Shown here: positions 1 through 52,215 of the stretch, piece after piece
How the letters are laid out: each line of letters begins with the position of its first letter
Numbering within the stretch: the stretch's first letter is position 1
Sequence record: OR844650.1
Reading direction: 5' to 3' (one strand)
DNA length: 64,000 nt
Notes under the pieces: generated by a model
Databases searched by the model: none
The model's input: the letters and a program-made list of their open reading frames with translations, nothing else
What the model was told of the DNA's origin: nothing
Program-made: the position numbers and the translations under genes

Positions 1-1
1 C

Positions 2-283
2 TTGTTCTTCGGGCTTAACTTCAAAACTCTCATCATCCCATACTTCATCCGTACCATGTTCAGTACTATGAAGTTGATGTTCAGGGATATAATCAGGAAT
101 TTGCATTTCTCGTTCTTTTTCTTGAATCAACTCTTCACGAGTTTTAATAATTGTTCCACCGGAACCGATTTTATCACCACGTGCGTTTAGATTAGCATTA
201 CCCAATGCTACCTGATGTTGATTTTGGTACTTGAGCATATCCATGTCAATTGTTGTACCACGATAAGTTGTATGTTTAGACAT
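2..283 (-). CDS. Conserved hypothetical phage protein, partial (runs off left edge; not in ORF track)
   Basis: Manual translation from ATG at 283: MSKHTTYRGTTIDMDMLKYQNQHQVALGNANLNARGDKIGSGGTIIKTREE..., open to the window edge; AAAGGA RBS upstream. Confidence 0.75.
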   Translation of the reverse strand, partial: MSKHTTYRGTTIDMDMLKYQNQHQVALGNANLNARGDKIGSGGTIIKTREELIQEKEREMQIPDYIPEHQLHSTEHGTDEVWDDESFEVKPEEQ

Positions 284-346
284 ATCAAAATCCTTTTATT
301 GTATGTGTGATATAAGCCTACAATAAACATTATATCACATGTTTTT

Positions 347-865
347 CTACCATTTCAAAAATTCGTTAACATCAAGTTCGTACTTCAATGAATCTACCAT
401 ATGTAGTCCAATCAAAAACAAACAGTATGATGCAACAGAGCTTCCACGACCTAGACCCCAAAAGATCTCATTTTCTTCCATATAATCAACAAGCCATATC
501 ATACATCTTAGTAGCTTTGTCATATTATAATATTCATATAAATCAAGTTCATACTCAACACGTTTTCGTGCTTCATCGGATGTGCATTTTTGTAAGAAAA
601 AGTCACGCAGATTTATATTGTCGTATACTGGATCATATCGCCACAGTTCATGATTTTTATCATGCTCAATTGTATAATCCAGCATACGTTGTTCTAAGCC
701 AAATTTTTTACAGTTATCATTGAATTTCAACCTTTCAGGTTCATCAATTTCCTGCAATTGTAAGTACTGGATATCTGCACCGCAATTGATTGCATAAACA
801 ACTGCGTTAAGATTACATTTCACATCACCATTGGGACTTATAAATCTGTTTCCTTGTACTTTCAT
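347..865 (-). CDS. DnaE/Pol III alpha-like N-terminal piece of polymerase core (split gene, part 1)
   Basis: RVEYELDLY...WGLGRGSSVASYCLFLIGLHMVDSLKYELDVNEFLK matches DnaE RLExEL...VGPGRGSGAGSLVAYALxITxLDPLxxDLLFERFL; ends immediately before the catalytic DxD motif. Confidence 0.85.
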   Translation of the reverse strand: MKVQGNRFISPNGDVKCNLNAVVYAINCGADIQYLQLQEIDEPERLKFNDNCKKFGLEQRMLDYTIEHDKNHELWRYDPVYDNINLRDFFLQKCTSDEARKRVEYELDLYEYYNMTKLLRCMIWLVDYMEENEIFWGLGRGSSVASYCLFLIGLHMVDSLKYELDVNEFLKW

Positions 866-1136
866 TTTTCTTCTTCTGGGCCTCTTCGTTGTCAGTTAGA
901 TATGAATCCATATCGAAGATACATGGGTCTTCTTCGTCATAAACAGTTTTTTCTTTTTGTCCTTGGCGAAGTTCTAGTTCAGCATAACATTGATTTAAGA
1001 CAGTTTGCATATTACCAATAATCATGTCGCTTAGGCCAGCAGCACGAGCAGAAGTTAAACGCATAGACTGTTCATTAATTTTTAACTGTAGTTCTTTTTC
1101 CGTCATTCCAGACGGGTCAAAAAACGGATTAAACAT
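825..1136 (-). CDS. Hypothetical protein
   Basis: 103-aa ORF, AGGAGG RBS, tightly packed with its neighbours. Confidence 0.7.
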   Translation of the reverse strand: MFNPFFDPSGMTEKELQLKINEQSMRLTSARAAGLSDMIIGNMQTVLNQCYAELELRQGQKEKTVYDEEDPCIFDMDSYLTDNEEAQKKKNESTRKQIYKSQW

Positions 1137-1137
1137 A

Positions 1138-3531
1138 TTAACCTCCTATGTTATTGTTTTGCAATGTAATCAAAAATGTATCTGAAACATAATTCACTGA
1201 TTCATGCGAAAAGTATCCGAATTCAACCGATGTGATTTCGAACTCTACACCTACCATTGTACCATGTTCATTGTTCTGAAGTAAAGTGTTGAAAAATGCT
1301 TCACCTTTCCCTGGTTGACAATATGCAACTGGAATGATAGGCATGAATTTTTTCTGTATACCATCTTCAATGTATGGGTGATTCATAAATCTTGGAACCG
1401 TATCAAGCATTTCATCACTGATACTTGGTATCGCATCAACGTATAGACCACGATTTTGTAAATCGGTTGGGTCTTTTACTAAGTTGGTTGTGTCTTCACC
1501 AATAGCCTGAAAAATATTTTGTCGTAAACCAAATAATTCACCAAGCTGACCGTTGTCGATTTGAGTATATTGACGTGGATTTTTGGATACAGATACTAAA
1601 GATCCTTCAGGTAAAACCTCTCTATATAATAGATCATATTGTAAGTTACCTTGATTGTCAAGTGCTGATATTATTTTATAATTACCCATTACCATTTTAA
1701 ATTTTCCATTTGGAATAGTAGTTCCATTTGGGTTAATTATACTATTTCTCAATACTTTCTTGATATCAGAAAGGTTAGTATATGGATACGTTTGACTTAG
1801 GAAGTTTTCTTTCAATAACATCTTCGGTATTTTCTGAAGACCATATCTATTGTCAGATTGTCGGAAAAATAGTTGATTAGTGAATGATGAAGTACTGATA
1901 CATTTAAACCATTCTCTCTCAAATGCAACCGAAGGTAATACATGTGCACTCAAATAATTCTGTCCGAATCCTCTTACAATCTTAAGGTTAAATATTTTTC
2001 TTGCTTCACCACCTTCAGTACTAAATGCTTTAACATAAAACGATAATTTAATATCATCATTTTCACTAAAATCAATACTTTTGGCATATGCAGTTCCTAC
2101 AAGATATCCATCTGGTGTCAAATCTATCCCATACTTTCTAATGTCATCACCACCATCTAAAACATACGAAACTTGATTAGAGCTATCAGTTTCAATTTTA
2201 GGATATATACTGTCTCCAAAATATTCACCAACATGTATGGTTCCTAAATCACTATCAGTAATAAAGTTTATATTATTACCTTCTTCTGCGTTTATCAAAA
2301 CCCTGAACATTTTTTGCATACCAATGATATTATCACCAAGAGTAGAGTCATAATATCCTAAATCAATCCAATCACTACTATCATAAACGGGCTTAATTGT
2401 TCCATTATCGTATTCACCACTAATTACGTATGGATACACAACATTATCTTTTAATTGATATAAATGATTGGGTAGTGGTTTTTCTGAAATAGAATATATA
2501 GTATCTATGTCTTCAGGACAAACCCACATTTGATATGCTTTATATCGTTGATTGATAGCAAACCTTTCACTTTCTTCGGTGTATGTACTTAATATATCAA
2601 CAATCTCAACTTTAAAATATGCATCACAAGCATCTGAGTCATATAAAAATGTTTGCAATAATTGCCCATTTGGGTTGAACACCATTCCAGTGTCAATTAA
2701 ATTACCATTTCTATTTTGAATATTAACTTTTACTTCTTTGTTTATACCAGAAATAGGCCATGTTGATTGTGCTGGCTTGAATACTGCGAAATCATTCGTA
2801 ATATGTTTATCTGGAACTTCAGAAATATCCATGTCAATCAAACGATATGCTGGAAAAAAGACACGAGGTGTAATATCAGTAGTCATGTCAGTACCCAAAA
2901 TGAAAGGTCGTCTTCTTCCAAATCCTTGAACGAACAATGTACTGTTGGAGCCATACTCAACATCACCAATACAATAAAGCTTTTTGTCATCACCAATCTC
3001 AACTCCGGGTGTAACCCAAACTTCTTGACTATCATATGTTATTGATGTATCAGTTAATCCTAGAACACCACTTGGTGAAATATTTCCAAAATACATAACA
3101 TTTACTGCTTGTAAATAAAAATTTATAATTTCTGTATTATTATAGGTTCCATCATTTTTACAATGAATTTTTATAAAATAAACATCTTCACTATTAGTAC
3201 TTGCAGATAAGTTAAATTCATTTTTGCTGATTTTACACTTATGCTTACCATTTACTAATTTATTACCAGTTGTACCATCTGAAATAGGAACAAAAGTATT
3301 TTCGTCATTACCAACATAAAAAGTATAATGTGGTTCTGGATCAAATACAGCACCTGAACTATCCAAGCATTGTATGTTAAGAATCATTTCTAAGTATTCA
3401 TCTTCATTTAATACATAGCTATCATCCGTTGTGCTTTCTTTATTGATACTCAAACGCACAAGAATGTCTTGTCCTTCTTGTATATATCGAGCATCGGCTT
3501 TTATATCCCATCGTGGGGTAAAAGTTGTCAT
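1138..3531 (-). CDS. Large virion structural protein (baseplate-associated-like, Ig/cadherin-like segment)
   Basis: About 800 aa, beta-rich, with a DLGTIHVGE...YVLDGG...LTPDGYLVG Ig-like segment; likely start MTTFTP at 3531 (GGAGA RBS); TAAATA upstream. Confidence 0.55.
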   Translation of the reverse strand: MTTFTPRWDIKADARYIQEGQDILVRLSINKESTTDDSYVLNEDEYLEMILNIQCLDSSGAVFDPEPHYTFYVGNDENTFVPISDGTTGNKLVNGKHKCKISKNEFNLSASTNSEDVYFIKIHCKNDGTYNNTEIINFYLQAVNVMYFGNISPSGVLGLTDTSITYDSQEVWVTPGVEIGDDKKLYCIGDVEYGSNSTLFVQGFGRRRPFILGTDMTTDITPRVFFPAYRLIDMDISEVPDKHITNDFAVFKPAQSTWPISGINKEVKVNIQNRNGNLIDTGMVFNPNGQLLQTFLYDSDACDAYFKVEIVDILSTYTEESERFAINQRYKAYQMWVCPEDIDTIYSISEKPLPNHLYQLKDNVVYPYVISGEYDNGTIKPVYDSSDWIDLGYYDSTLGDNIIGMQKMFRVLINAEEGNNINFITDSDLGTIHVGEYFGDSIYPKIETDSSNQVSYVLDGGDDIRKYGIDLTPDGYLVGTAYAKSIDFSENDDIKLSFYVKAFSTEGGEARKIFNLKIVRGFGQNYLSAHVLPSVAFEREWFKCISTSSFTNQLFFRQSDNRYGLQKIPKMLLKENFLSQTYPYTNLSDIKKVLRNSIINPNGTTIPNGKFKMVMGNYKIISALDNQGNLQYDLLYREVLPEGSLVSVSKNPRQYTQIDNGQLGELFGLRQNIFQAIGEDTTNLVKDPTDLQNRGLYVDAIPSISDEMLDTVPRFMNHPYIEDGIQKKFMPIIPVAYCQPGKGEAFFNTLLQNNEHGTMVGVEFEITSVEFGYFSHESVNYVSDTFLITLQNNNIGG

Positions 3532-3587
3532 TATAATTCTCCATAGCCAAGCTGCCATTATCTATAGATTATTTATATAAAGGACAA

Positions 3588-3608
3588 GGAAGACCCATAA
3601 GGTCTTCC
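3588..3608 (-). terminator. Intrinsic terminator after topoisomerase medium subunit
   Basis: GGAAGACC-5nt-GGTCTTCC hairpin. Confidence 0.6.
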
Positions 3609-3618
3609 ATTAAATATA

Positions 3619-5031
3619 TCAATTGTCTGATTTAGGAGTAAAGTCAATCTTTCTTAGTTCTTTTAGTTCAGATTTATAAATGTCCCAAATTAAGTCATGA
3701 TTAGATAACAGTTCATTGTACTTATCCATCAAATCAAGATTATCTTGAATATCTTGTAGTACTGATTGATAATTATCTTGCGTCCAGCGATATGAAGGGA
3801 AGTTTACAATGCTTTGAATATTCTCTTCCGTTGCTTCAATTTCGGTATTTAACGATTTAACGAATTCAACCATTTCAGCACGGTTTGCAAATCCTTTTAC
3901 CTTAGCAATCATATCATTATCGAAACATTCTTTAATTAGAATTTTATAACGAACTTCAGCAGCACAATCATCAAGTTTCTTTTCATAACGCTTGATGTAA
4001 TATTTGAAACGGAAATCAACGAAGTCTTTAATCAAATCCATCGTAGTATCGTAAACTTTCACTTTGCCATTTTCACCTAGAACAGTTAAATGTTGAGTCA
4101 TTTTTTTGTTAATGCCAAAATACTCAATAACATCCATCTCTGTCCATTTAGCTGACGTTCCACGTGGAAGTTTAATGGTAATATCAATTACATCAGTACT
4201 ATCATTGTCATAATCACGAATCTCACCATCATCACTCATTTTGATTAGTTTTTCGATGAATTTCTCAATACTGTAATTAGGTGGTAAGCCTGTTACTTTA
4301 ACAGTGCTTGCATCAATAACCTCAGCTTTACCATAGAATTCATACTTATTTTCATCAAGCTTAGTCACAACATCACTTGCACCACATGAAACATAATATG
4401 GGGTCATTTCTTTTAGTGGTTTTTTATCAATAGCACGAATGCAATTATCAATAATATCTTCAATTTTATGTGGTAGAATTGTACTCTTATAACCAACTGA
4501 CATACTATCATTACCAAACAATGATAATGGAATAATAGGCAAGAAATGAACAGGTTCATATGTTGTCCCGTCATAGTTCTCTTTCATTGGTATAATATCA
4601 GCATCACGCAAAACAAGCATCTCAGTACTCTTATTCTTTTTAACATAAGTGTAACGAGCAGATGCTGGTGTACTGTTTACTTGTGTACCAAAACCACCAC
4701 GTTTTCCAATAAGAGGATAGTTGTTAGCTACTGGAGATGCTAGATTTTGAAGTGTTCCTGATGCTGACGTGTCTCCATGAAGATAGATACCATCACTAAT
4801 CATTTTTCCAGCACATGATACTGTTTTAATTTCCCCACTAATTTTAGATAATGTGAAGATTGCTTTACGTTGTGAACTCTTTAGACCATCAATTCCAGGA
4901 ATAGCACGGTCTAGTGTATACATCGAATATTCTAGTGATGTTGTATTCACATAATCAGAACTGTTATAATCTAGTAGAGTTAGTGTTTGGTTATCGATAT
5001 TATGATTTTCTGTTTTTTTACTTTTAGCCAT
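3619..5031 (-). CDS. Type IIA DNA topoisomerase, GyrA/gp52-like subunit
   Basis: DRAIPGIDGLKSSQRK, YLHGDTS and active-site ASARYT motifs. Confidence 0.95.
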   Translation of the reverse strand: MAKSKKTENHNIDNQTLTLLDYNSSDYVNTTSLEYSMYTLDRAIPGIDGLKSSQRKAIFTLSKISGEIKTVSCAGKMISDGIYLHGDTSASGTLQNLASPVANNYPLIGKRGGFGTQVNSTPASARYTYVKKNKSTEMLVLRDADIIPMKENYDGTTYEPVHFLPIIPLSLFGNDSMSVGYKSTILPHKIEDIIDNCIRAIDKKPLKEMTPYYVSCGASDVVTKLDENKYEFYGKAEVIDASTVKVTGLPPNYSIEKFIEKLIKMSDDGEIRDYDNDSTDVIDITIKLPRGTSAKWTEMDVIEYFGINKKMTQHLTVLGENGKVKVYDTTMDLIKDFVDFRFKYYIKRYEKKLDDCAAEVRYKILIKECFDNDMIAKVKGFANRAEMVEFVKSLNTEIEATEENIQSIVNFPSYRWTQDNYQSVLQDIQDNLDLMDKYNELLSNHDLIWDIYKSELKELRKIDFTPKSDN

Positions 5032-5047
5032 TCCATTGTCTCTTGGT

Positions 5048-5070
5048 AAAAGGGGAACACCATGTTCCCC
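5048..5070 (-). terminator. Terminator-like hairpin between the two topoisomerase genes
   Basis: GGGGAACA-3nt-TGTTCCCC followed by TTTT on the minus strand. Confidence 0.6.
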
Positions 5071-5081
5071 ATTAGTCTATA

Positions 5082-7046
5082 TTATTCCATCCAGTTCTTA
5101 CGATCATCTGCACGTTTCTTGTTGAAAATCAAATCAAGAGTTTCTCCAAGACGTCCATCATCGGTGATCGCTACTGCAACACTATTAGTGAATGCATCAC
5201 GGAAGTTTGCTTTTTCTAAAGTTCCTAAACCTTTTGCACGCGTTGCTTTCCAGCCTTTCCAATCATCTGGGTTATATTCATGCACATTATGACCATAGTA
5301 GTATTTTGATTCTTTACCTTTCTCAAGAATGATAAATGGTGTTTTGAATACATACACAAATGGATTTTCTGGGTCTTGAAACAATTCAGGCCAGAATTTA
5401 AATAAGAAGTTACACACTAGAGCACCAATGTTCTTCCCATCTTCATCTTCATCAGCACAGATGTAAAGCTTACCATAGTTTAGTTCAGAACGTTCTGCTT
5501 TAACACCTGGAACTAAGTTGATACTAGCCATTATATCATGTAAAGCCATTGAATCCATTAATTCTTTGGTTTTCTCAGTACCACTGACGTTCATAATTTT
5601 CCCACGCAATGGTAGAATACCATGAATACTTGGTATACGAGCACTAGCCATGTTGGAAATTGCAGAGTCACCTTCTGCAATCAATAGAATACACTGTGAA
5701 CGGTCTGTTCCAGTACTATCCAATAGTTTTGCAACTTTACCTTTTAGAAGTTTCTTTGCTAGGCGACGATCTTCTTCTGCATCTTTCTTATTTGTACGGG
5801 CAGCACAACGTTCGAAGATTTCATCAACCCATTCTTTGTTCTTCTTAACTAATTCATCAAACCATTCGGTACTCATAGCTTGTTGAATTGGACGGATTAC
5901 GTTTTCATTAGTTAGTTTAGATTTAATCTGTGAGTTGAATGAAGGTGCTTTCATAGTTGTGACATTATAAATCAACAAACCTTCTTCAATATCAGAACGA
6001 TTAGGTTTCATCCTACGTTTCTTAGATTCTTTCTCTAGTGCAGTTCCTACACCGAGTGAGAAGAATTTCTTGAATGTATCAAGATGTGTACCACCATCAA
6101 ATGCAGGAGCATTGTTAACCAACCCATGCATATGGAAATTCGTGTTCATGCCAGCTACTGCATTAGGAACAATATAAAAAGTACTGTTAAAATTGAATGA
6201 ATCATCTTTAACATTCAACTGCATTAATTTAGATGCATTGAAGAGTGCTTTTTCAGTGTTTCCTTTAATAGCAATACGTTTCCCGTTCAGAAAGATTTTA
6301 TAAGTTGGGTTAGCTGCTGCCATTTCTTTAAGAATACTATAAAGTAATTCTGTAGGTAGTTTTCTGTTTGGAAAAACTTCTTTACTCAAAGTAAAACGAA
6401 TTGTTGTTCCAGTTTTATCGGTTTGTACCTTTCTAATAGTAGGTTCGTGTACATGAAGCTCAGGGAACATAATAGTTCCTTCCTCAAACTTCTGATTGAA
6501 CTTATAAAACCCATCATAACCATCATTACTACTTTGTGTTTTATACGGACGACCTTGGCGATGAATTTCTAACTCTGCCTTAGAACTGACAATCATTGCA
6601 ACAGAACCACCTAAACCATTCTGACCAATCGTTTCATCACGTTTTGAATCGTCAAAGTTACGGCCTGTTTTTGTTTCAGTCATTACCATAGTACACAAGT
6701 TTTTCTGATACTCTGGAACATAATCAATTGGAATACCACGTCCATTGTCACTAATTTCAAATGATAGTTCTTCTTCATTGAAATCAACTTTCAAAACAGG
6801 TTCTTTGGTTCCAGCTTTTTTAAATTCATCTAAGCTGTTATCAATAATTTCACGTGTAGCAGTAAGAATTGCAGGAACCCATTCTACGTTCTTAACCTCA
6901 TAACCTGATTCGCCAAAAATCAGTACTTGACTTTCATGCACTGAACGAGAACCAAGATACATCTCGGTACGCAAACGAGCATGTTGATAATCATTTAGTC
7001 GTTGAACATCATGTTCCTGTAGAACAGCACTTTCTTTCTTAGCCAT
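5082..7046 (-). CDS. Type IIA DNA topoisomerase, GyrB-like (gp39+gp60 fused) subunit
   Basis: GHKL motifs EIIDNSLDE, DNGRGIP, GQNGLGGS; TOPRIM motifs EGDSA, PLRGK, DEDEDG, KGLG. Confidence 0.96.
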   Translation of the reverse strand: MAKKESAVLQEHDVQRLNDYQHARLRTEMYLGSRSVHESQVLIFGESGYEVKNVEWVPAILTATREIIDNSLDEFKKAGTKEPVLKVDFNEEELSFEISDNGRGIPIDYVPEYQKNLCTMVMTETKTGRNFDDSKRDETIGQNGLGGSVAMIVSSKAELEIHRQGRPYKTQSSNDGYDGFYKFNQKFEEGTIMFPELHVHEPTIRKVQTDKTGTTIRFTLSKEVFPNRKLPTELLYSILKEMAAANPTYKIFLNGKRIAIKGNTEKALFNASKLMQLNVKDDSFNFNSTFYIVPNAVAGMNTNFHMHGLVNNAPAFDGGTHLDTFKKFFSLGVGTALEKESKKRRMKPNRSDIEEGLLIYNVTTMKAPSFNSQIKSKLTNENVIRPIQQAMSTEWFDELVKKNKEWVDEIFERCAARTNKKDAEEDRRLAKKLLKGKVAKLLDSTGTDRSQCILLIAEGDSAISNMASARIPSIHGILPLRGKIMNVSGTEKTKELMDSMALHDIMASINLVPGVKAERSELNYGKLYICADEDEDGKNIGALVCNFLFKFWPELFQDPENPFVYVFKTPFIILEKGKESKYYYGHNVHEYNPDDWKGWKATRAKGLGTLEKANFRDAFTNSVAVAITDDGRLGETLDLIFNKKRADDRKNWME

Positions 7047-7080: not shown

Positions 7081-7109
7081 ATTGTATCACCAATGTTTTG
7101 TTTGTCTCA
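7081..7109 (-). promoter_or_regulatory. Putative middle-type promoter (TGAGACAA box plus extended -10) for topoisomerase
   Basis: TGAGAC-17nt-TACAAT with TGn extension. Confidence 0.7.
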
Positions 7110-16311: not shown

Positions 16312-17912
<1,601 letters not shown>

Positions 17913-23407: not shown

Positions 23408-23436
23408 ATTATAGCATTATATTTTAATTTGTCTCA
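23408..23436 (-). promoter_or_regulatory. Putative middle-type promoter for the exonuclease
   Basis: TGAGAC(AA)-17nt-TATAAT with TGC extension. Confidence 0.7.
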
Positions 23437-29796: not shown

Positions 29797-29825
29797 ATTA
29801 TAGCACACCTTCTAGTTTTGTCTCA
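29797..29825 (-). promoter_or_regulatory. Putative middle-type promoter for primase-helicase
   Basis: TGAGAC(AA)-17nt-TATAAT with TGTGC extension. Confidence 0.7.
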
Positions 29826-30857: not shown

Positions 30858-31211
30858 ATGAATCAATATAACACTATTCCACCATTCATTACTGTAATCC
30901 AGTATGATGGTAAAACGTTTGTTGGTATCATCAAAATCAAAAGCAAACAGTATACAACTCTTTACTGTTTCGATGATATGGATGATTCAATGCAAGACGA
31001 ATTGTTAGGTATAGCACACGATTGGTGGTGGCAAAGTAATAGAACCATTCCAGTTTGTCTATTCTTTCAAGAAGAGATGGAGAAATTTGAACCGTACACA
31101 CAGAGATTCGATACACCGTCGGTGAATTTCGTATGTGGTCCAGTAGTTTCTTTAAGCAATTTGCCACAGAAACGCATCAAGCGTCGTAATGTGGCTCTTA
31201 AGAAGAAGTAA
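30858..31211 (+). CDS. Conserved hypothetical protein
   Basis: 117-aa ORF with phage-like composition; TAAATA at 30815-30820 upstream; converges on the DnaE-like gene. Confidence 0.65.
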   Translation: MNQYNTIPPFITVIQYDGKTFVGIIKIKSKQYTTLYCFDDMDDSMQDELLGIAHDWWWQSNRTIPVCLFFQEEMEKFEPYTQRFDTPSVNFVCGPVVSLSNLPQKRIKRRNVALKKK

Positions 31212-31836
31212 GATGTTCAACTAAAGCATTTAGTTGTACAACAATCATTAAGCTATATGCGTAAGCATGTGGCTTTTTGAAATATCGTAATTTATTTCCT
31301 GCTTGGTCAGTGCCGATAGTACTATAATCCCATATGGTAGCTTTAACTTCGTCCCATGTGTTCATACTTTGGCACTGCCTTTTTCCTGGGCGAATCATTG
31401 CAATAAACATTGCTAGTTCGTCTATAGATTTAGGCTTCCATACATTTAATAAAGTTACATGTTTTTTAATTTGCGATAGATGTTCTACAATTTCGGGTTC
31501 TAACAATAGATCCCAATTTGGTTCCTGATTCATTAGTTCTTTTAAATGCTCTCTATCACGAACATACATGTAAGCTGACTGTGAAAGAATATCAACTTTT
31601 TGATACCCTAACCTTTCAGCTTCTTTATATTGTATACTTGCCAATCCAGTGATTGGGTCAATAGGTATATTATCAAAATGAACACCACTATTATGGGGGA
31701 TTAAACCATCCTCCGTAATTTTTTCAGTACTTCGCACACATGGAAGTTTAGCGATTACGCTTTTACTATCCTTGAAGTCAATGTCAATATCAGTTCGGGC
31801 TTTTCTATAATGTTTAGAATCGGTCGAATCCTGCAT
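31198..31836 (-). CDS. DnaE/Pol III alpha-like catalytic piece (split gene, part 2)
   Basis: RTDIDIDF (DxD), PHNSGV, LGYQKVDILS (third Asp), KPKSIDELAMFIAMIRPG, YFKKPHAYAY. Confidence 0.88.
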   Translation of the reverse strand: MQDSTDSKHYRKARTDIDIDFKDSKSVIAKLPCVRSTEKITEDGLIPHNSGVHFDNIPIDPITGLASIQYKEAERLGYQKVDILSQSAYMYVRDREHLKELMNQEPNWDLLLEPEIVEHLSQIKKHVTLLNVWKPKSIDELAMFIAMIRPGKRQCQSMNTWDEVKATIWDYSTIGTDQAGNKLRYFKKPHAYAYSLMIVVQLNALVEHLTSS

Positions 31837-32143
31837 TTTTTATTTGCTCCTGTAACTGTTTAACTGTATTAGTCAAAGTTGATATTTGATTCTCTAATAA
31901 TCTACAATTTTGTTTCGTCTTTGCCAATTCTTGACTTAAACTGAAAAAGCGTTCTTCGTGTCTTTCTACCAAAGAAATAATTTTTTCAATACGAGCAGGA
32001 TCATGAACTTGAAATGTTTTACCATCTAAAGTTATTTCAGTAATAGATCCTTGTCTAAGTAGAGATATTTGTTTTGATTTTTGTTCTTTAGGTACAGGTA
32101 CATACCCTTCTGGTATTTTATTATATATACTTTTTCCATTCAT
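31814..32143 (-). CDS. Coiled-coil hypothetical protein
   Basis: C-terminal heptad pattern; overlaps both neighbours. Confidence 0.7.
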   Translation of the reverse strand: MNGKSIYNKIPEGYVPVPKEQKSKQISLLRQGSITEITLDGKTFQVHDPARIEKIISLVERHEERFFSLSQELAKTKQNCRLLENQISTLTNTVKQLQEQIKNAGFDRF

Positions 32144-32850
32144 AATCCTGCCTCACATAGCATAATCTTAATTTCATCACAATCCTTTTTGTATTTTATA
32201 GTTTTGATTTCAAAATAACTTGGATCGATGTATTTAAGTATATATTCAATTTCTGAGTTTGATAGTTTTTTAAAAAACTTATTAGTACTTTTTTTAGGAG
32301 CAAGCCAGATAATCCAAGGTGAAATTTTACCACTCTCAATCCATGCAATTGCACGGGCAGAACTTACATTTTCAAAGAAAGTATTCCATTGTACATTCAA
32401 ATTTTCAGCCCATTCAACCAGTGAGATAACACTTCTTGCAATTGCTTCTTTTGGGTGCTCGGCACGAATTGTTTTTAATATCCATTCATCTTTTGCTTTA
32501 TATGTACTCCATTCCGTGATTGGTTTGTTATTGATAATCAAGTACTTTACAAACTCGTCCACATTAATAATATCTCTATTATTCAAATAGTATTCGGCAA
32601 AACTATAAAAATCATTAAAGTACTTTGACTTTATAAAAGCAATAAAAGGCTCTACGCCTTTTTTAAATGGGAACTTATTCAATTCCATAAATTGCATATA
32701 TATACGAAAAGCCTCCATCATCTGGCGGCTTTGGCGGTCTTCGTATCGGTCACGTTTTATACATTTATGTGTGTTTACAGTTTCTTCACGTTTAAATTCA
32801 CGATCACAAAATCTACAGGTATATACTTGATTACTTGATTTCTTTGCCAT
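32140..32850 (-). CDS. Zn-finger-containing hypothetical protein
   Basis: YTCRFCDREFKREETVNTHKC. Confidence 0.65.
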   Translation of the reverse strand: MAKKSSNQVYTCRFCDREFKREETVNTHKCIKRDRYEDRQSRQMMEAFRIYMQFMELNKFPFKKGVEPFIAFIKSKYFNDFYSFAEYYLNNRDIINVDEFVKYLIINNKPITEWSTYKAKDEWILKTIRAEHPKEAIARSVISLVEWAENLNVQWNTFFENVSSARAIAWIESGKISPWIIWLAPKKSTNKFFKKLSNSEIEYILKYIDPSYFEIKTIKYKKDCDEIKIMLCEAGL

Positions 32851-33676
32851 ATTTTTTACATTCTTCTTTAAACAATTTCATCATAGATTTCTTTTCATTA
32901 TCTTGAAAACCATTATTGTCAAGAAATGTCTCAAATGTTTTTTTATCATACTGCAATAGAACAATTTTGTACTCATCTTCATTCATTTGAGTAGATATAG
33001 TATCAGGTTGTGAGCTTTTAATTAACTCAAATAATTCGTTATTTGCCTTTTTGAAATTCTTAGAAAAGTTTAACCAGTTACGTGGCATTTCTTGTCCACC
33101 AATCATATCATGGACTGAACACATAAGCTGATATACTAATTCTGGATGTTCTTTCATATCCCAAAATCCATCATTAACCATATCATTTAGCATAATAAGT
33201 TGGTATTTGACAACTTCAGTATCTACTAATGAAACAATTTCGGAACCTGATACGCCAAATTCGACCATTGAGGATATTAATTTTTGTGCGTCATCTTTTG
33301 ATTGGACTGCAAATTTAATACGCCAATCATAATCACTATGACAGTACTTAGTTACTGATGAAACATTTGTCCCTGAAGACTTTAATTCAGTAACTAGTTC
33401 AGTCAGTGCTTCTTTACCACCAGATTTCCATTTTCCAAATACACTTTCAACTTTACTACTAGGGTAGGTTACTTGTAACGAATCATCTAAAGAGCTTACC
33501 CATCGCAAAACAGTATATGGAGTAAACTCTTTTCGTTCTTTTTCGGTCATGTCATTATAGTACTTATAATCAGCACGGTCAATGTGTTTTAGAAATTCAG
33601 CAATAGAAAAAGAATGCTGTGTTGGTTTTTCATCATCATCGACCGACTTATTTTTAATATCACTGAAATCAAACAC
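32831..33676 (-). CDS. Putative clamp-loader small subunit (gp62-like) with internal insertion
   Basis: FTPYTVLRWVSS ... LNDMVN...HPELVYQLMCSV...RNWL loosely follows the gp62 pattern; located in a replication operon. Confidence 0.4.
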   Translation of the reverse strand: MFDFSDIKNKSVDDDEKPTQHSFSIAEFLKHIDRADYKYYNDMTEKERKEFTPYTVLRWVSSLDDSLQVTYPSSKVESVFGKWKSGGKEALTELVTELKSSGTNVSSVTKYCHSDYDWRIKFAVQSKDDAQKLISSMVEFGVSGSEIVSLVDTEVVKYQLIMLNDMVNDGFWDMKEHPELVYQLMCSVHDMIGGQEMPRNWLNFSKNFKKANNELFELIKSSQPDTISTQMNEDEYKIVLLQYDKKTFETFLDNNGFQDNEKKSMMKLFKEECKKYGKEIK

Positions 33677-33680
33677 TATT

Positions 33681-34178
33681 TTATACTCCTAGATACAAAT
33701 CTTGAATTTTTTCGTTTTCATCTGCAAAGTACACACATGGTGGATTTTCACCACTATGTAGTGGGACGCATAGTAAATTCTTTTTAGGTAACATTGGTAT
33801 CTGCCACTTTGTAGTTAATGCAAATACACGTAGTACTTTGACTGGTTCAAACTTAGGATACATTGAACGGATAGGATTGTAAACAAAAGCTTTTGGTTCT
33901 TTCATGTTAAGAATGTTTTCAATTGTACACATCTCAACCATACCAGTTTCTTCATCACCTAACATAATTTGCCATCCTAGAGGCACTTGAATAATCTTTT
34001 CACCAATTTGAAGATCAGCACTAATACTATTAAATGATACGGTGTTTAGAATATGTCTAAAATAAAAATCAGATTCACCATTTGGGCTTAGATCCAAAAC
34101 ACAATACATTTCTTCAGGGATATGTTCTGTTACTAAATCCATGTCAAAAGAATTATTTTCAGGTGTTAATACGTTCAT
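33681..34178 (-). CDS. Conserved hypothetical protein
   Basis: 165-aa ORF with GGAGA RBS. Confidence 0.7.
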   Translation of the reverse strand: MNVLTPENNSFDMDLVTEHIPEEMYCVLDLSPNGESDFYFRHILNTVSFNSISADLQIGEKIIQVPLGWQIMLGDEETGMVEMCTIENILNMKEPKAFVYNPIRSMYPKFEPVKVLRVFALTTKWQIPMLPKKNLLCVPLHSGENPPCVYFADENEKIQDLYLGV

Positions 34179-34187
34179 GTCATCTCC

Positions 34188-34616
34188 TTAGTACTGCGAA
34201 TCTTCTTCGTCATCATAATATTCTTCATCATCTTGGTCTTCTACGCCATAAAATTCAAGTCCATAAGTTTCACACATCTCTTGAATTTTATCTACATCAG
34301 TATCCAGATATGAATCAAAATTACCACTTAGACTTACTACATCAATAAAAGTTTTCGTGTCAGTACTTGCATAGATGATATCATATTTCAATGATTCTAC
34401 TTTAGAATCAATTCGTGTCTGTAATTCATAGATATTAATCCAAGAATCACTATCAATATTACATCTCCATACGTTAGTATCATCCGTTTCTAGCTCAGGT
34501 ATATAGTCAAGAGAAGATACCATGTCATCCATAATACCATCATCGTTCAACAATACATCCATAACTTCTAAAGTTTCTTGGTCACAAATAAAAGCAATAC
34601 TAGATCTCAATTCCAT
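34188..34616 (-). CDS. Highly acidic hypothetical protein
   Basis: 142-aa Asp/Glu-rich ORF. Confidence 0.7.
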   Translation of the reverse strand: MELRSSIAFICDQETLEVMDVLLNDDGIMDDMVSSLDYIPELETDDTNVWRCNIDSDSWINIYELQTRIDSKVESLKYDIIYASTDTKTFIDVVSLSGNFDSYLDTDVDKIQEMCETYGLEFYGVEDQDDEEYYDDEEDSQY

Positions 34617-34650: not shown

Positions 34651-34679
34651 ATTATATCACAAACAGCGGGTTTATCCCG
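34651..34679 (-). promoter_or_regulatory. Putative middle-type promoter (overlaps a hairpin)
   Basis: CGGGAT(AA)-17nt-TATAAT with TGTGA extension. Confidence 0.5.
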
Positions 34680-36171: not shown

Positions 36172-36990
36172 TTAATTAGTTCGAGTATTATATTCGTACT
36201 CAAATGTATATACTAAATCTTTATCACAGTTAGGGTTACTTGCATCTAAAATGTCACTATTAGTAATCATCCATTCAATGTAATTCAATGGAACTGTACT
36301 CATTGGCTCACCTTTGTGTTTACCAAATGGCATGAATTGATAACGCATTGGTGTGTTGCAGAAAGTTACAATTTGCTCACCAATATCACCATTAGGTTCG
36401 ATATGTCCACGTTCGATTGCAATTTCAACTAATTTGATTAGAACCTGATAACACATAAACACATCGTCTTTTGCTGCGTGTGCATTAACAGGTCGATGAA
36501 CATCACGATAACATCCAAACTTATACCACAAATAACTTAGAGTTAAGTTTTTAAATTCAATATCTTCTGCGAACATTTTCTTAGCAAGACGAAGGGTACA
36601 AATCCATTTATTTTCATCAAGTAAGTACTGTGAAATTGAGTTACGATATTTATATTCGTTATCTACCATCATTCTACGGTCAAATTGTACATTATGACCA
36701 ACAAAATACTTACGGCATCCCATAAGTGCATCAATGTTATCTAAATCATCTTTATACCCAACACAATTAGCTACATCCTCAGTACTGATAAAGTGCACAG
36801 CAGATGCCTCTGGTGGAATATCTTTCAAGGGTTTGTATCTCAATGTATAGTTATCAATAGTATCAATGTTTTCATGTGAAGTATGTGGATACGAGATACT
36901 AAATTCAATAATATCATCTTCACTCTCAACCCCAGTAGTTTCAGTATCTAGAACTGCTACATTTGATAAAAACTCATTTAATTTTGTCAT
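36172..36990 (-). CDS. DEDDh 3'-5' exonuclease (ExoX/epsilon-like) with C-terminal MPFGKHKG domain
   Basis: VLDTETTG, GHNVQFD, HAAKDD, MPFGKHKG. Confidence 0.85.
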   Translation of the reverse strand: MTKLNEFLSNVAVLDTETTGVESEDDIIEFSISYPHTSHENIDTIDNYTLRYKPLKDIPPEASAVHFISTEDVANCVGYKDDLDNIDALMGCRKYFVGHNVQFDRRMMVDNEYKYRNSISQYLLDENKWICTLRLAKKMFAEDIEFKNLTLSYLWYKFGCYRDVHRPVNAHAAKDDVFMCYQVLIKLVEIAIERGHIEPNGDIGEQIVTFCNTPMRYQFMPFGKHKGEPMSTVPLNYIEWMITNSDILDASNPNCDKDLVYTFEYEYNTRTN

Positions 36991-39826: not shown

Positions 39827-45124
<5,298 letters not shown>

Positions 45125-49209: not shown

Positions 49210-52200
49210 TTACCAAGTGAAGAATCCATTGTTTACTGACGCAGTACTTTTTTCATGAATACCAATATCCATATCCAAAATACCAAAAATATTCTCTAAT
49301 TTTTTAGTTAGAACAATCTCTTCCATTTTTTCAGTATCAAATGGTAGTTCCAAGAACCATTCTGGAAGATACTCAACACAGTCAATTGGATAACCAACAG
49401 CTTTAATTCCCATAGGATTATCTTTTAAGTTACAGACAATTACTTTTGTTCCATCCGTTACTTCTGGTACAGATTTATCATCATAAACTTCACGTAGACG
49501 GTTCCATTGGATACCAGCAAGAACGTGACCAACTTTACACTTACCAGTTAGCTGATATTCAGCCTCTAAATTAGTGTAGTTTTTTACAGTTTTTGGTGAA
49601 CCTTTTTCATGTACAGGCATATCCTTAAATACGTCCTTAAACTCACGTACACGCTGTTTTAGCTGTTGTTCACTCTCACCTACCAGTAATGCGATTAGAG
49701 TCTCTTCTAGGAAGTTCTGGATGTATTTTGGCGTGTCTGAGCGTTTAATTTCAAGACCCATCGCTTTGATTTCACCTGGTTTACCATCAATATCTTTACG
49801 GAACCCATCTTCCCAGTACTTCAGAATTGCATAACGTTTTTTCTTCAAGAATAGGCCACGCGAACCAACCATCTCAAGGTCTGCACCAACAATCTTACCT
49901 TTTTCAATACCAGTGTTGAACATCTCATGCATAAATGATGGGAAAGATTCACCAACTTCTTCACCAATTTTAATATACATATCAACAATCTCTTCTTTAG
50001 ATAGATTATATGGAATACCTTGTTCTTTCAGATAATGAGTTACACTAAAGTAAACTGAGTCAGTATCACCATAAATTACTGAACCACCTTGGTGGTTATA
50101 TACACCAGTAGTAATTTCATTGATACGACTTGCCATATGTTTGGTCATAGAACGTCCAGTTAATGTTACGGATTGACCTAAACGTTTGTCAAAAAAACGA
50201 GAACCTTTGTTCAATAGTGCACCATATAGACTGTTTAGAAGAATCTTACGAATCTGTTGGTTCTGTTTCCAGAAAGCACTACGTTGTTTGAAGTAATCTT
50301 TTTCTTCTTTAGGACAGAAAATACGACCATCTTTTAGTACTAATCCGTTTTCTACAATCAACTTAGCAACTTCATCCCACTGTCCTTTACCAATTTCTTT
50401 ACGAAGTAAGTATACAGGATCATTATCATGAATATTAGTTCTAAACATTGTACCAGGGGTATAGTTTGATAGTAGTGGTTCAACTTTTTCATAGCCATTA
50501 AACTCCCAACCATCAGTATACATATGTTTGTAGTCAATGACCATTTTTTGCTGTGCTTTACGTTCAGAATACCATTGAGTTAGAATGTCAGGAATTACAC
50601 CAGACTTAGACTTATCAAAAAGTGTTCCGTTTGCACTAAGTACAATAGTACTATCTTCTGCAAAAATAATATCATATAGCTCTTTACCCGTTGCTTTAAA
50701 AGAACTCCCATCTTCTAAATCAACAATCAATGTTTCTTCTGACTTTTCATGAACCATTGTAAATTCAACAGCAGCAAATAAACCATGCCATGCCGCAGTC
50801 CAATCTGGTTCAAATGATTTAGATTTAGATTTGTTCTTCTGTTCTTGGATTTTAGCTGCAAGATACGCATCGGTGTAATCTTGACGTAATTGACCAAGAA
50901 TACATTCAGTACTCATACCCAAAGTACGTAGAACAGTAGGGTAAAGAGAGTTAAAGTCAGTACACCCAAGGTCACTTACAAGTCCTAGTACTGGATCTTG
51001 TACCCATGCACCTGCTGCTTTTGCACTAATTTTCTCATCTTCTTCTTCACCATCTTCACCATAATATTCCATTTCTGGATCAAACTCAAGATCATCTTTC
51101 GGTGCTTTGTTGAAAACAACTTCACCACGAGTATGTGCTAAGTTGATAATAGCAGTGTCGATTAGTGCTACTGAACCCATTGTTGTACTGATAAGTACAC
51201 ATTCTTTGTGTGCAAGTCGATTGTGTAGGTTGATATAGTCACATTTAGCATCAATCTTTTTAAGAAGAATACTATCCTGTTTAGAATAACGCAAGAAAGT
51301 AATGTAATCCTCTCTGTAAAGTTTATCCAATGAACCTTCATAGGATACTTTATTTTCTTTAGTTACTTTTTCAGCAATATAATCTAGTTTATAAGATTGT
51401 TCAACTTGACCAGCATGTTTCTTATACAAAGCCAAATAATCAAGATGGACGCGACCTACCAGATCATATGTTTGAACAGTTTTACCAAAGTTGTCTGCTT
51501 CACGTGAATTTGGTTTTTTATTCCATAAACACCAACGAGCAGTTGTTGCTTCATTGAAGATTTTTTTAGTTCGATTGATCATATATGGAATATCAAAGAA
51601 TTCACTATTCCATCCTGAAATAACATCAGAATCATCAATTAAACTAAAGAATTCCATAAACATTTCCTTTTCGTCTGTATATAAAATTACAGTACTGTTA
51701 GGATCGTTTGTTTCTTCATTTAGTTGGCGAACAATATCTTGTGCTTCATAAATTTCCATATCAGCAGGTGGTAAAGTAAGTACATAATCCTTTCCAGTCC
51801 ATGATTGATATAGAGAAATAGCGGTTACTCGGTTAAACGGGTCTGATGGTGGAGCATAACCAAATTTCTTATGGAAATCAGTCTCGATATCGAAGAACAC
51901 GATGTTCAAATCGGGTGAACCTTTTCCCATATATTCTTTAGCTAATGTTTTAAATGTAATGTTACAATCACTTTCAAAAATACGTAGACCTTCACTTTTG
52001 TGTTGCTCTACACTTTTATTCATTTGAGCTTGAGTTTGAAACTCAAAATGTTTAGCCATTGTACCATAAACAGTTTTATGTGTTCCTTGTGGGGATTCAA
52101 CATAATATTCATATACTGGATCTAATTCGCGTAGAATACGTTTACCATTCTTACGTTCAACTACATGAAGAATATCACCAGTACGTTTACGTTCCATATA

Positions 52201-52215
52201 AGCATCGATATACAT
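49210..52215 (-). CDS. Family B DNA polymerase (gp43-like)
   Basis: Exonuclease motifs FDIETD, WNSEFFDIPY, YSKQD; polymerase motifs DFNSLYP, KILLNSLYG, YGDTDS, KKRY. Confidence 0.97.
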   Translation of the reverse strand: MYIDAYMERKRTGDILHVVERKNGKRILRELDPVYEYYVESPQGTHKTVYGTMAKHFEFQTQAQMNKSVEQHKSEGLRIFESDCNITFKTLAKEYMGKGSPDLNIVFFDIETDFHKKFGYAPPSDPFNRVTAISLYQSWTGKDYVLTLPPADMEIYEAQDIVRQLNEETNDPNSTVILYTDEKEMFMEFFSLIDDSDVISGWNSEFFDIPYMINRTKKIFNEATTARWCLWNKKPNSREADNFGKTVQTYDLVGRVHLDYLALYKKHAGQVEQSYKLDYIAEKVTKENKVSYEGSLDKLYREDYITFLRYSKQDSILLKKIDAKCDYINLHNRLAHKECVLISTTMGSVALIDTAIINLAHTRGEVVFNKAPKDDLEFDPEMEYYGEDGEEEDEKISAKAAGAWVQDPVLGLVSDLGCTDFNSLYPTVLRTLGMSTECILGQLRQDYTDAYLAAKIQEQKNKSKSKSFEPDWTAAWHGLFAAVEFTMVHEKSEETLIVDLEDGSSFKATGKELYDIIFAEDSTIVLSANGTLFDKSKSGVIPDILTQWYSERKAQQKMVIDYKHMYTDGWEFNGYEKVEPLLSNYTPGTMFRTNIHDNDPVYLLRKEIGKGQWDEVAKLIVENGLVLKDGRIFCPKEEKDYFKQRSAFWKQNQQIRKILLNSLYGALLNKGSRFFDKRLGQSVTLTGRSMTKHMASRINEITTGVYNHQGGSVIYGDTDSVYFSVTHYLKEQGIPYNLSKEEIVDMYIKIGEEVGESFPSFMHEMFNTGIEKGKIVGADLEMVGSRGLFLKKKRYAILKYWEDGFRKDIDGKPGEIKAMGLEIKRSDTPKYIQNFLEETLIALLVGESEQQLKQRVREFKDVFKDMPVHEKGSPKTVKNYTNLEAEYQLTGKCKVGHVLAGIQWNRLREVYDDKSVPEVTDGTKVIVCNLKDNPMGIKAVGYPIDCVEYLPEWFLELPFDTEKMEEIVLTKKLENIFGILDMDIGIHEKSTASVNNGFFTW

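Follow-up and report, generated by a model that had tools for sequence, protein, structure and literature searches.

A probable two-polypeptide minimal DNA polymerase III alpha encoded by distant genes in an Asteriusvirus jumbo phage

In a 64,000-nt stretch of phage DNA (record OR844650.1, hereafter the window), the product of the ORF 347..865 and a 212-aa protein probably form a two-polypeptide minimal C-family DNA polymerase, which would be held together non-covalently and would act as an accessory to a family B replicase. A minimal, split DNA polymerase III (Pol III) alpha encoded by two distant standalone genes has been described in the group 2.2 jumbo phages (Iyer et al. 2021, Viruses 13:63, PMC7824862) and the observation is thus already known. 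What is new beyond PMC7824862 are the residue-level boundaries of the two pieces, the thumb and finger deletions, the constancy of the split site, the occurrence in a non-jumbo phage and the promoter context. No experimental study of the split mini Pol III was found in the literature, and it is not treated in a phage Tn-seq preprint, a 2026 jumbo-phage review or a 2026 bacterial polymerase survey. The two proteins are called N-half and C-half below.

The source phage is an Asteriusvirus (PBECO4/121Q type), a Rak2-like jumbo phage of E. coli, and the first 4 kb of the window show 100% identity with Escherichia phage ECO103 4-12-1, and equally with several further Asteriusvirus genomes, among them PBECO4 and 121Q. 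PBECO4, 121Q and their kin are Rak2-like jumbo myoviruses with genomes of ~350 kb. In the PBECO4 annotation, gp449 (the N-half equivalent) is a 'DNA polymerase', gp488 (the C-half equivalent) is a second 'DNA polymerase' and gp495 is a 'DNA polymerase exonuclease subunit'; both split proteins are also labelled 'DNA polymerase' in PHROGs and RefSeq. Two further genes of the window bear on the role of the pair:

49210..52215, minus strand: family B DNA polymerase, 1001 aa, with its own exonuclease domain (Pfam DNA_pol_B_exo1, E 3.8e-23; DNA_pol_B, E 1.1e-21)
36172..36990, minus strand: DnaQ-like 3'-5' exonuclease, 272 aa (Pfam RNase_T, E 6.7e-15; NCBIfam Pol III epsilon models)

The family B enzyme is presumed to be the main replicase of the phage, and the DnaQ-like exonuclease is a possible partner of the mini Pol III. 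The other replication genes in the window encode T4-type helicases (UvsW-like), a primase, a gp32-like SSB, UvsX/UvsY (by annotation) and topoisomerase II. Since the window holds a family B polymerase, an exonuclease and a T4-type replication set, the mini Pol III would be an accessory enzyme and not the sole polymerase.

The two polypeptides and their match to Pol III alpha

N-half and its parts are laid out as follows, with residues of E. coli Pol III alpha (DnaE) denoted Ec:

347..865, minus strand: gene for the predicted N-terminal (nucleotide-binding) subunit of the split minimal Pol III alpha, 172 aa, PBECO4 gp449 equivalent (Pfam, PHROG, NCBIfam, fold)
350..667, minus strand: first segment of the Pol III alpha palm, codons 67-172 (~106 aa), equivalent to Ec 273-394 (VIA-align; hhalign)
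437..451, minus strand: GRGSS loop, codons 139-143, the GS motif of a Pol-beta-type nucleotidyltransferase, invariant in 45 homologues
668..865, minus strand: family-specific N-terminal extension, codons 1-66, a beta-hairpin plus two helices (secondary structure of the model)

The ORF starts with ATG and its product ends in DVNEFLKW. Residues 92-171 match positions 16-95 of the 260 of Pfam PF07733 (DNA_pol3_alpha, the Pol III alpha NTPase/palm domain) at E 1.9e-9, with a score of 37.9 bits vs a gathering cut-off of 23.9. PHROG 11127 covers the protein end to end (E 3e-87), and ten NCBIfam DnaE models match it, some of them starting at about residue 58. When a profile of 45 homologues was aligned with E. 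coli DnaE by hhalign, residues 98-172 fell on Ec 320-394, ungapped (E 6e-6), with GRGS (139-142) on Ec 361-364 and F169-L170 on F391-L392 of the FERFL motif. The chain stops three residues past the FERFL equivalent and seven residues short of the position of the catalytic DxD. A PDB sequence profile search was marginal (E 0.013). The AlphaFold model of N-half (mean pLDDT 87) found C-family polymerases as all 13 of its 13 best PDB matches, and this predicted model superposed with residues 67-172 on Ec 273-394 (Z 9.3-10.3, rmsd 2.7 Å) and on M. tuberculosis DnaE1 at Z 12.2; overall, the VIA-align superpositions of N-half gave Z 9.3-12.2 and rmsd 2.3-2.8 Å over 100-104 residues. Residues 67-172 would form the first part of the palm, with the GRGSS loop holding the triphosphate of the incoming dNTP, by analogy with published DnaE structures.

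The first 66 residues are not a PHP domain, being far too short and without its metal motifs. They have no counterpart in any DnaE superposition and no invariant His, Asp or Glu; indeed, there is no invariant residue before W75 among the 45 homologues. A look-alike search (Atlas) with the N-terminal 97 residues returned the phage's own families only.

C-half is encoded 30.3 kb from N-half on the same strand:

31198..31836, minus strand: gene for the predicted C-terminal (metal- and template-binding) subunit, 212 aa, PBECO4 gp488 equivalent (PHROG 11778; fold; collinear motifs)
31783..31791, minus strand: D-I-D, codons 16-18, equivalent to Ec D401/D403, invariant in 40 homologues
31591-31593, minus strand: third aspartate, D82, equivalent to Ec D555, invariant in 40 homologues

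At the sequence level, C-half matched the Pfam finger domain at E 0.045, with only 10 of the 40 family members giving a match, and the hhalign comparison of its profile with the single E. coli DnaE sequence was weak (E 0.03). A PDB sequence profile search was not significant (E 0.45), and it returned four sub-threshold segments collinear with DnaE1. As this support from sequence was weak, a fold comparison was needed to settle the assignment. The nine best PDB matches of the C-half model (pLDDT 93.5) were all Pol III alpha, with a probability of up to 1.00, and the tenth stood at E 2; the Foldseek E-values in this search were modest (0.003-0.03). Residues 8-212 of the model superposed on Ec 394-784 and on T. 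aquaticus (Taq) alpha 456-841 with Z 8.5-9.6, the next unrelated chain reaching Z 2.3. The likely assignment of C-half to Pol III alpha hence rests on the predicted structure together with collinear motifs, which are the following five:

TDIDIDF, D16/D18: Ec D401/D403
HNSG, H48: Ec H511
QKVDIL, K80/D82: Ec K553/D555
IRPG, R149: Ec RPGP 639
KKPHAYAY, H190: Ec NKSH, H760

The residues named in these five landmarks do not vary among 40 homologues, whose identity goes down to 40%. Ec D401, D403 and D555 are the catalytic aspartates (Lamers et al. 2006, as cited in PMC7824862); they are missing from the 172-aa N-half and are supplied by C-half as D16, D18 and D82. The spacing of the landmarks shows two deletions in C-half. 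About 78 residues of the thumb are lost between DxD and HAGG (32 residues from D16 to H48 vs 110 from Ec D401 to H511), and about 80 residues of the fingers are lost between RPG and K-x-H. C-half would contribute the three metal-binding aspartates, the remainder of the palm and a shortened finger module carrying RPG and KKPHAYAY.

As N-half ends at Ec 394 and C-half starts at Ec 394, the two are contiguous, non-overlapping and gapless parts of one core, with the cut falling in the nucleotidyltransferase palm, after the GS loop and before the DxD motif. The palm and fingers of both predicted models superpose on solved DnaE structures, and the minimal core amounts to ~320 homologous residues over the two chains, with C-half ending at the equivalent of Ec 784. 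Neither piece contains the PHP, thumb, clamp-binding/HhH, OB or tau-binding regions, and no Pfam match to clamp-binding, HhH, OB-fold or tau-binding domains was found among the neighbouring genes. N-half and C-half are separate genes, each in a replication-gene neighbourhood and with its own start codon, with no intein and no fusion. We propose that the two proteins associate non-covalently and rebuild one active site, and that the assembled pair would be a small, low-processivity templated DNA polymerase. Beside the family B replicase, such an enzyme could serve, e.g., in gap filling, repair or the synthesis of one strand, as proposed by Iyer et al., who described the split pair as accompanying a family B polymerase and suggested one-strand synthesis or repair as its role (PMC7824862).

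Conservation, pairing and the nature of the enzyme

The N-half profile, searched against 1.84 billion representative proteins, gave 3055 matches at E<=0.001; at E<=1e-30, there were 482 representative clusters. All of the best 150 representatives are 152-196 aa long, with the match reaching the last profile position, and there was no fused or longer form among them; the split site is the same in these 150 and in the 45 family members that were aligned. The catalytic and substrate-binding residues of the two families are invariant down to 31-40% identity. For C-half, the clustered database gives a family of 785 members, 120 of which were listed, with lengths of ~157-220 aa. In a phage collection, the counts of N-half and C-half per host genus are near-identical (Escherichia 34/34, Pseudomonas 11/11, Klebsiella 10/11), and they are equal as well for Salmonella, Erwinia, Xanthomonas, Yersinia and Cronobacter.

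Distances of 11 to 182 kb separate the two genes in all relatives checked: 30 kb in PBECO4, about 33 kb in RaK2 and GAP32, 43 kb in PA5oct, 182 kb in Atu_ph07, 14 kb in Stenotrophomonas phage CM1 and 11 kb in Alishewanella phage Slickus01. Both lie among replication genes in three distant lineages, and the local synteny around both is common to the source phage and PA5oct. In Slickus01, the gene order is N then C, the reverse of that in the Rak2-like phages. The genome of this phage is 142 kb, and the presence of the split mini Pol III in a non-jumbo phage is an addition to the published description.

The sequence-only reading of this DNA had read 347..865 as the N-terminal half of a split DnaE core whose partner lies at a distance of 30 kb, and both statements are borne out, by the Pfam, hhalign and fold matches of the two pieces and by the position of the ORF 31198..31836. 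It was also right in giving the GRGS region to DnaE, as PF07733 scores above its gathering cut-off there, in letting the protein stop directly behind the FERFL equivalent, and in seeing no PHP metal motifs in the N-terminal part, where the predicted structure is a hairpin and two helices. Its DnaE-like C-terminal part is homologous as claimed, though longer, at ~106 aa by superposition instead of ~85 aa. The description as half of the DnaE core is correct as to the split and wrong as to the whole, which is not a normal DnaE but a minimal core beside a family B polymerase. The label 'orphan' has to be dropped, the pairing with C-half being a conserved and published feature of this phage group.

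The conservation pattern also bears on whether the proteins are functional at all and on what they do. A 172-aa 'truncated' Pol III alpha, vs 1120 aa, was noted in the CBB genome paper (PMC5259590), which would fit a decaying, functionless fragment of a captured dnaE. This is very unlikely for N-half and was ruled out by the conservation of both families, given the hundreds of clusters with constant length, constant end point and invariant active-site residues at 31-40% identity, the equal constancy of the partner family and the confident folding of both models. Split dnaE genes whose products are joined by trans-splicing inteins are known, as in the case of cyanobacterial DnaE, and a post-translational joining of the two halves in this way was considered as well. 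However, N-half ends at EFLKW without an intein N-fragment, C-half has only 15 residues before its DxD and no intein C-fragment, and lengths are constant in both families; the termini and lengths leave no room for intein fragments, and we rejected this explanation as exceedingly improbable.

More weight attaches to the question of whether the pair is a templated polymerase. Against it speaks the lack of the thumb and of all modules by which DnaE binds the DNA duplex or the clamp, as well as of the OB module, and a complete family B polymerase, exonuclease domain included, is already encoded by the phage. The Pol-beta-type fold is, moreover, used by many non-polymerase enzymes. The pair could instead be a nucleotidyltransferase, such as a terminal transferase, a primer-tailing enzyme or a nucleotide-signal synthase, or the halves could act separately, each with other partners. 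Against this, the DnaE-specific finger motifs RPG and K-x-H-A-x-x-Y, which contact the template and the incoming nucleotide in DnaE, are kept and invariant, and both genes sit among replication genes in the three distant lineages; the near-perfect co-occurrence argues against separate roles of the halves. We give these non-polymerase functions only a small chance and favor a two-polypeptide, accessory C-family polymerase.

Transcriptional settings of the two genes

The N-half gene closes a three-gene block, and the C-half gene lies in an operon with a different promoter:

3588..3608, minus strand: 9-bp hairpin resembling an intrinsic terminator, between the topoisomerase gene and the late motif that it directly precedes (GAP32 and RaK2 have terminators in this position too)
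3570..3577, minus strand: TATAAATA, a T4-type late-promoter motif by its placement, 12 nt before the first ATG of the 806-aa gene
1138..3558, minus strand: 806-aa virion structural protein gene, first of the three-gene block ending with N-half (PHROG 13911; PBECO4 and GAP32 annotation)
825..1136, minus strand: 103-aa ORF (PHROG 15348), 1 nt after the end of the 806-aa gene and overlapping the start of N-half by 41 nt
329..358, minus strand: sigma-70-like promoter TTGAAA-18-TGaTATAAT for the downstream genes (11/12 matches, TG extension; conserved in GAP32 and RaK2)
34651..34678, minus strand: promoter-like site GGGATAAA-N11-TGATATAAT heading the C-half operon, after the terminator of a helicase gene (by motif class)
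31814..34616, minus strand: five tightly packed genes (142, 165, 281, 236 and 109 aa) preceding C-half within its operon, with gaps of -23 to +9 nt

The 103-aa ORF and N-half are probably co-transcribed or translationally coupled. Their arrangement is the same in GAP32 and RaK2, and no terminator was found between the 806-aa gene, the 103-aa ORF and N-half. The -35 element of the downstream promoter falls in the EFLKW codons of N-half. The RNA libraries found were wastewater metatranscriptome contigs and one probable DNA run. The contigs on positions 1-6000 are patchy and direction-less, with RNA inseparable from phage DNA, and carry no timing; under the same limit, one X2 contig spans 498-1028 across the junction of the 103-aa ORF and N-half. 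The 55 virion proteins of CBB do not include N-half, and neither do the proteins flagged by mass spectrometry in PA5oct.

A late motif ATAAATA has been proposed for Rak2-like phages (PMC5259590), and CATAAATA stands at the matching place in GAP32. In the whole window, TATAAATA is not enriched (6 matches vs 10.5 expected), so that the weight lies on its placement.

C-half is the sixth gene of its operon. The 165-, 281- and 236-aa genes have syntenic counterparts in PA5oct, EST35_0217-0219, located ahead of the C-half gene there, and the look-alike search (Atlas) with the 236- and 281-aa proteins returned the phage's own families only, plus a C2H2 zinc-finger hint for the 236-aa protein. It is a matter of speculation whether the 165-, 281- and 236-aa proteins or the DnaQ-like exonuclease are further subunits of the polymerase. 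The pattern G-R-R-A-Y-A-A-A, 10-12 nt, TGnTAYAAT occurs at six sites, all on the coding strand and all before replication-type genes, i.e., those for SSB, the C-half operon, the primase, the exonuclease, a small ORF block and the topoisomerase. The chance expectation for these six sites is 0.015 (dinucleotide shuffles); one position of the pattern was widened after the C-half site had been seen, so that the membership of this site in the class is partly post hoc. The sequence-only reading had placed N-half downstream of a virion-protein gene with TAAATA upstream and its partner in a middle-type operon, and both placements agree with TATAAATA before the 806-aa gene and with the replication-gene class of the C-half promoter.

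With a late-type promoter on the N-half block and a replication-gene promoter on the C-half operon, N-half may limit when the enzyme forms, in line with the sequence-only reading, which had proposed that timing could control assembly. In the stronger form of this idea, C-half would be made with the replication (middle) genes and N-half with the late virion genes, and the enzyme would assemble only late. The terminator and TATAAATA directly upstream of the N-half block, with no terminator inside it, point in this direction, as do the promoter class that C-half has in common with the SSB, primase, exonuclease and topoisomerase genes and the recurrence of a terminator plus xTAAATA in GAP32 and, more weakly, in RaK2. 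However, the T-tract of the hairpin 3588-3608 is interrupted (TTGTCCTTTA), so the terminator may be leaky and read-through from the topoisomerase operon is possible. Furthermore, the N-half operon of PA5oct is preceded by a terminator and TATAAT, TATAAATA marking a structural gene elsewhere in that phage, and the N-half of Slickus01 lies directly behind a UvsW-like helicase gene in an uninterrupted gene run. N-half thus stands in non-late contexts in both phages, and a late context is not a conserved property of the system. On these promoter motifs, we consider a time-gated enzyme unlikely.

A wider version, which we likewise regard as unlikely, would put the two subunits of the Rak2-like phages in different temporal classes, with the enzyme present only after late transcription starts. 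A mini Pol III formed late may be a gap-filling or end-repair polymerase acting before packaging. The gene separation itself would then be a regulatory device. As a further possibility, the syntenic 165-, 281- and 236-aa (zinc-finger) proteins of the C-half operon may replace the missing DNA-holding domains, which would make up a new multi-subunit polymerase together with the mini Pol III.

Significance and comparison with known systems

In the reading that we prefer, an accessory C-family polymerase made of two polypeptides, no smaller version of the bacterial replicative polymerase fold is known than the split mini Pol III, which is cut in two inside its catalytic palm. Should it prove active, C-family polymerases would have their minimal catalytic unit defined by it, and a widespread group of large phages would have a second polymerase in replication or repair. 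Activity would also have a bearing on the origin of the C-family, since Iyer et al. treat the split mini Pol III as a model of the ancestral enzyme.

The split Pol III alpha of group 2.2 of Iyer et al. is the same system, with an N-terminal NTP-binding protein and a C-terminal Mg- and template-binding protein encoded by distant genes. As in that group, further Pol III domains are lacking, and the pair is accompanied by a family B polymerase in a T4-like background (gp23-type, gp32, UvsW). Atu_ph07, one of the phages named as belonging to group 2.2, has homologues of both window proteins, and nothing essential differs in the source phage.

Compared to bacterial Pol III alpha (DnaE1; E. coli 2HNH, 4JOM and 5FKV; T. 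aquaticus 2HPI, 3E0D and 4IQJ), the phage proteins are collinear over Ec 273-784 and share the palm fold, the GS loop, the DxD plus third aspartate, and the RPG and K-x-H finger motifs. In contrast to DnaE1, the phage version consists of two chains, with ~320 homologous residues vs 1160; it is without the PHP, thumb, clamp-binding, HhH, OB and tau-binding regions, and its fingers are truncated.

Like the split-intein DnaE of cyanobacteria, the phage enzyme would be a C-family polymerase built from two distant genes, but the phage split site is a different one, inside the palm between the GS loop and DxD, and as the phage halves carry no intein fragments, no covalent joining is expected. The gene 43A/43B split family B polymerase of some T4-like phages likewise has its catalytic core on separate, non-covalently assembled polypeptides. 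In phiKZ-like phages, split multisubunit RNA polymerases also have the core on separately encoded polypeptides that assemble non-covalently (PMC7824862). The folds of both gp43A/43B and the phiKZ-like RNA polymerases are unrelated to that of the mini Pol III, and in contrast to the phage Pol III alpha pieces, which make up a minimal core, their pieces sum to a full-size enzyme.

Split mini Pol III and related DnaE genes in other phages

Both halves of the split minimal Pol III alpha subunit (mini Pol III) are encoded by the 142-kb Alishewanella phage vB_AspM_Slickus01 (locus L007), and hence the split enzyme is not confined to jumbo genomes.

L007:8533-9045, N-half of split mini Pol III, vB_AspM_Slickus01
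L007:19884-20495, C-half of split mini Pol III, vB_AspM_Slickus01

The N-half comes first in this phage, immediately after the gene for a UvsW-like helicase; 11 kb further downstream, close to the clamp-loader gene, is the C-half. The GRGS region of the window's N-half (347-865) matches PHROG 13169 at profile positions 339-409 and PHROG 7513 at 363-438, near the C-terminal end of both profiles (about 460 positions each), and PHROG 11165 (782 positions) at 37-111. These match positions suggest that the DnaE genes of other phages may have a comparable split site or no PHP domain.

Genes around the C-half and a standalone exonuclease

Three genes, encoding 165-, 281- and 236-aa proteins, precede the C-half both here and in PA5oct, where EST35_0217-0219 are their syntenic counterparts. 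The 236-aa protein has an N-terminal C2H2-type zinc finger, and all three proteins are candidates for further mini polymerase subunits. On the opposite strand, a 117-aa ORF shares 14 nt with the C-half gene at the latter's 3′ end; the ORF's PA5oct homologue, EST35_0221 (35% identity), occupies the same convergent position.

32140-34178, minus, 165-, 281- and 236-aa genes preceding the C-half (PA5oct counterpart, L003:802-2493)
30858-31211, plus, 117-aa ORF
36172-36990, minus, standalone DnaQ-like exonuclease

The exonuclease carries a C-terminal extension matching Pfam PF12843 (QSregVF_b, E 1.6e-5). Since the family B polymerase already has an exonuclease domain of its own, the DnaQ-like protein may serve either that enzyme or the mini Pol III.

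Promoter-like sites

A near-consensus sigma-70 promoter for downstream genes has its −35 hexamer within the N-half codons for the conserved C-terminal EFLKW, an arrangement also present in GAP32 and RaK2.

329-358, minus, sigma-70 promoter, TTGAAA-18-TGATATAAT

Another class, G-R-R-A-Y-A-A-A followed after 10-12 nt by TGnTAYAAT, was found by pattern match at six sites in the window, compared to 0.015 expected from shuffles, one position having been widened after the C-half site was seen, which makes that site's membership partly post hoc.

39903-39930, minus, promoter-like site
34651-34678, minus, promoter-like site
29797-29824, minus, promoter-like site
23408-23435, minus, promoter-like site
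17711-17738, minus, promoter-like site
7081-7108, minus, promoter-like site

All six lie on the coding strand and exclusively upstream of replication-type genes. This class may be the middle-promoter signal of the Asteriusvirus genus, and it is distinct from TGAAACG, the box described in CBB and GAP32.
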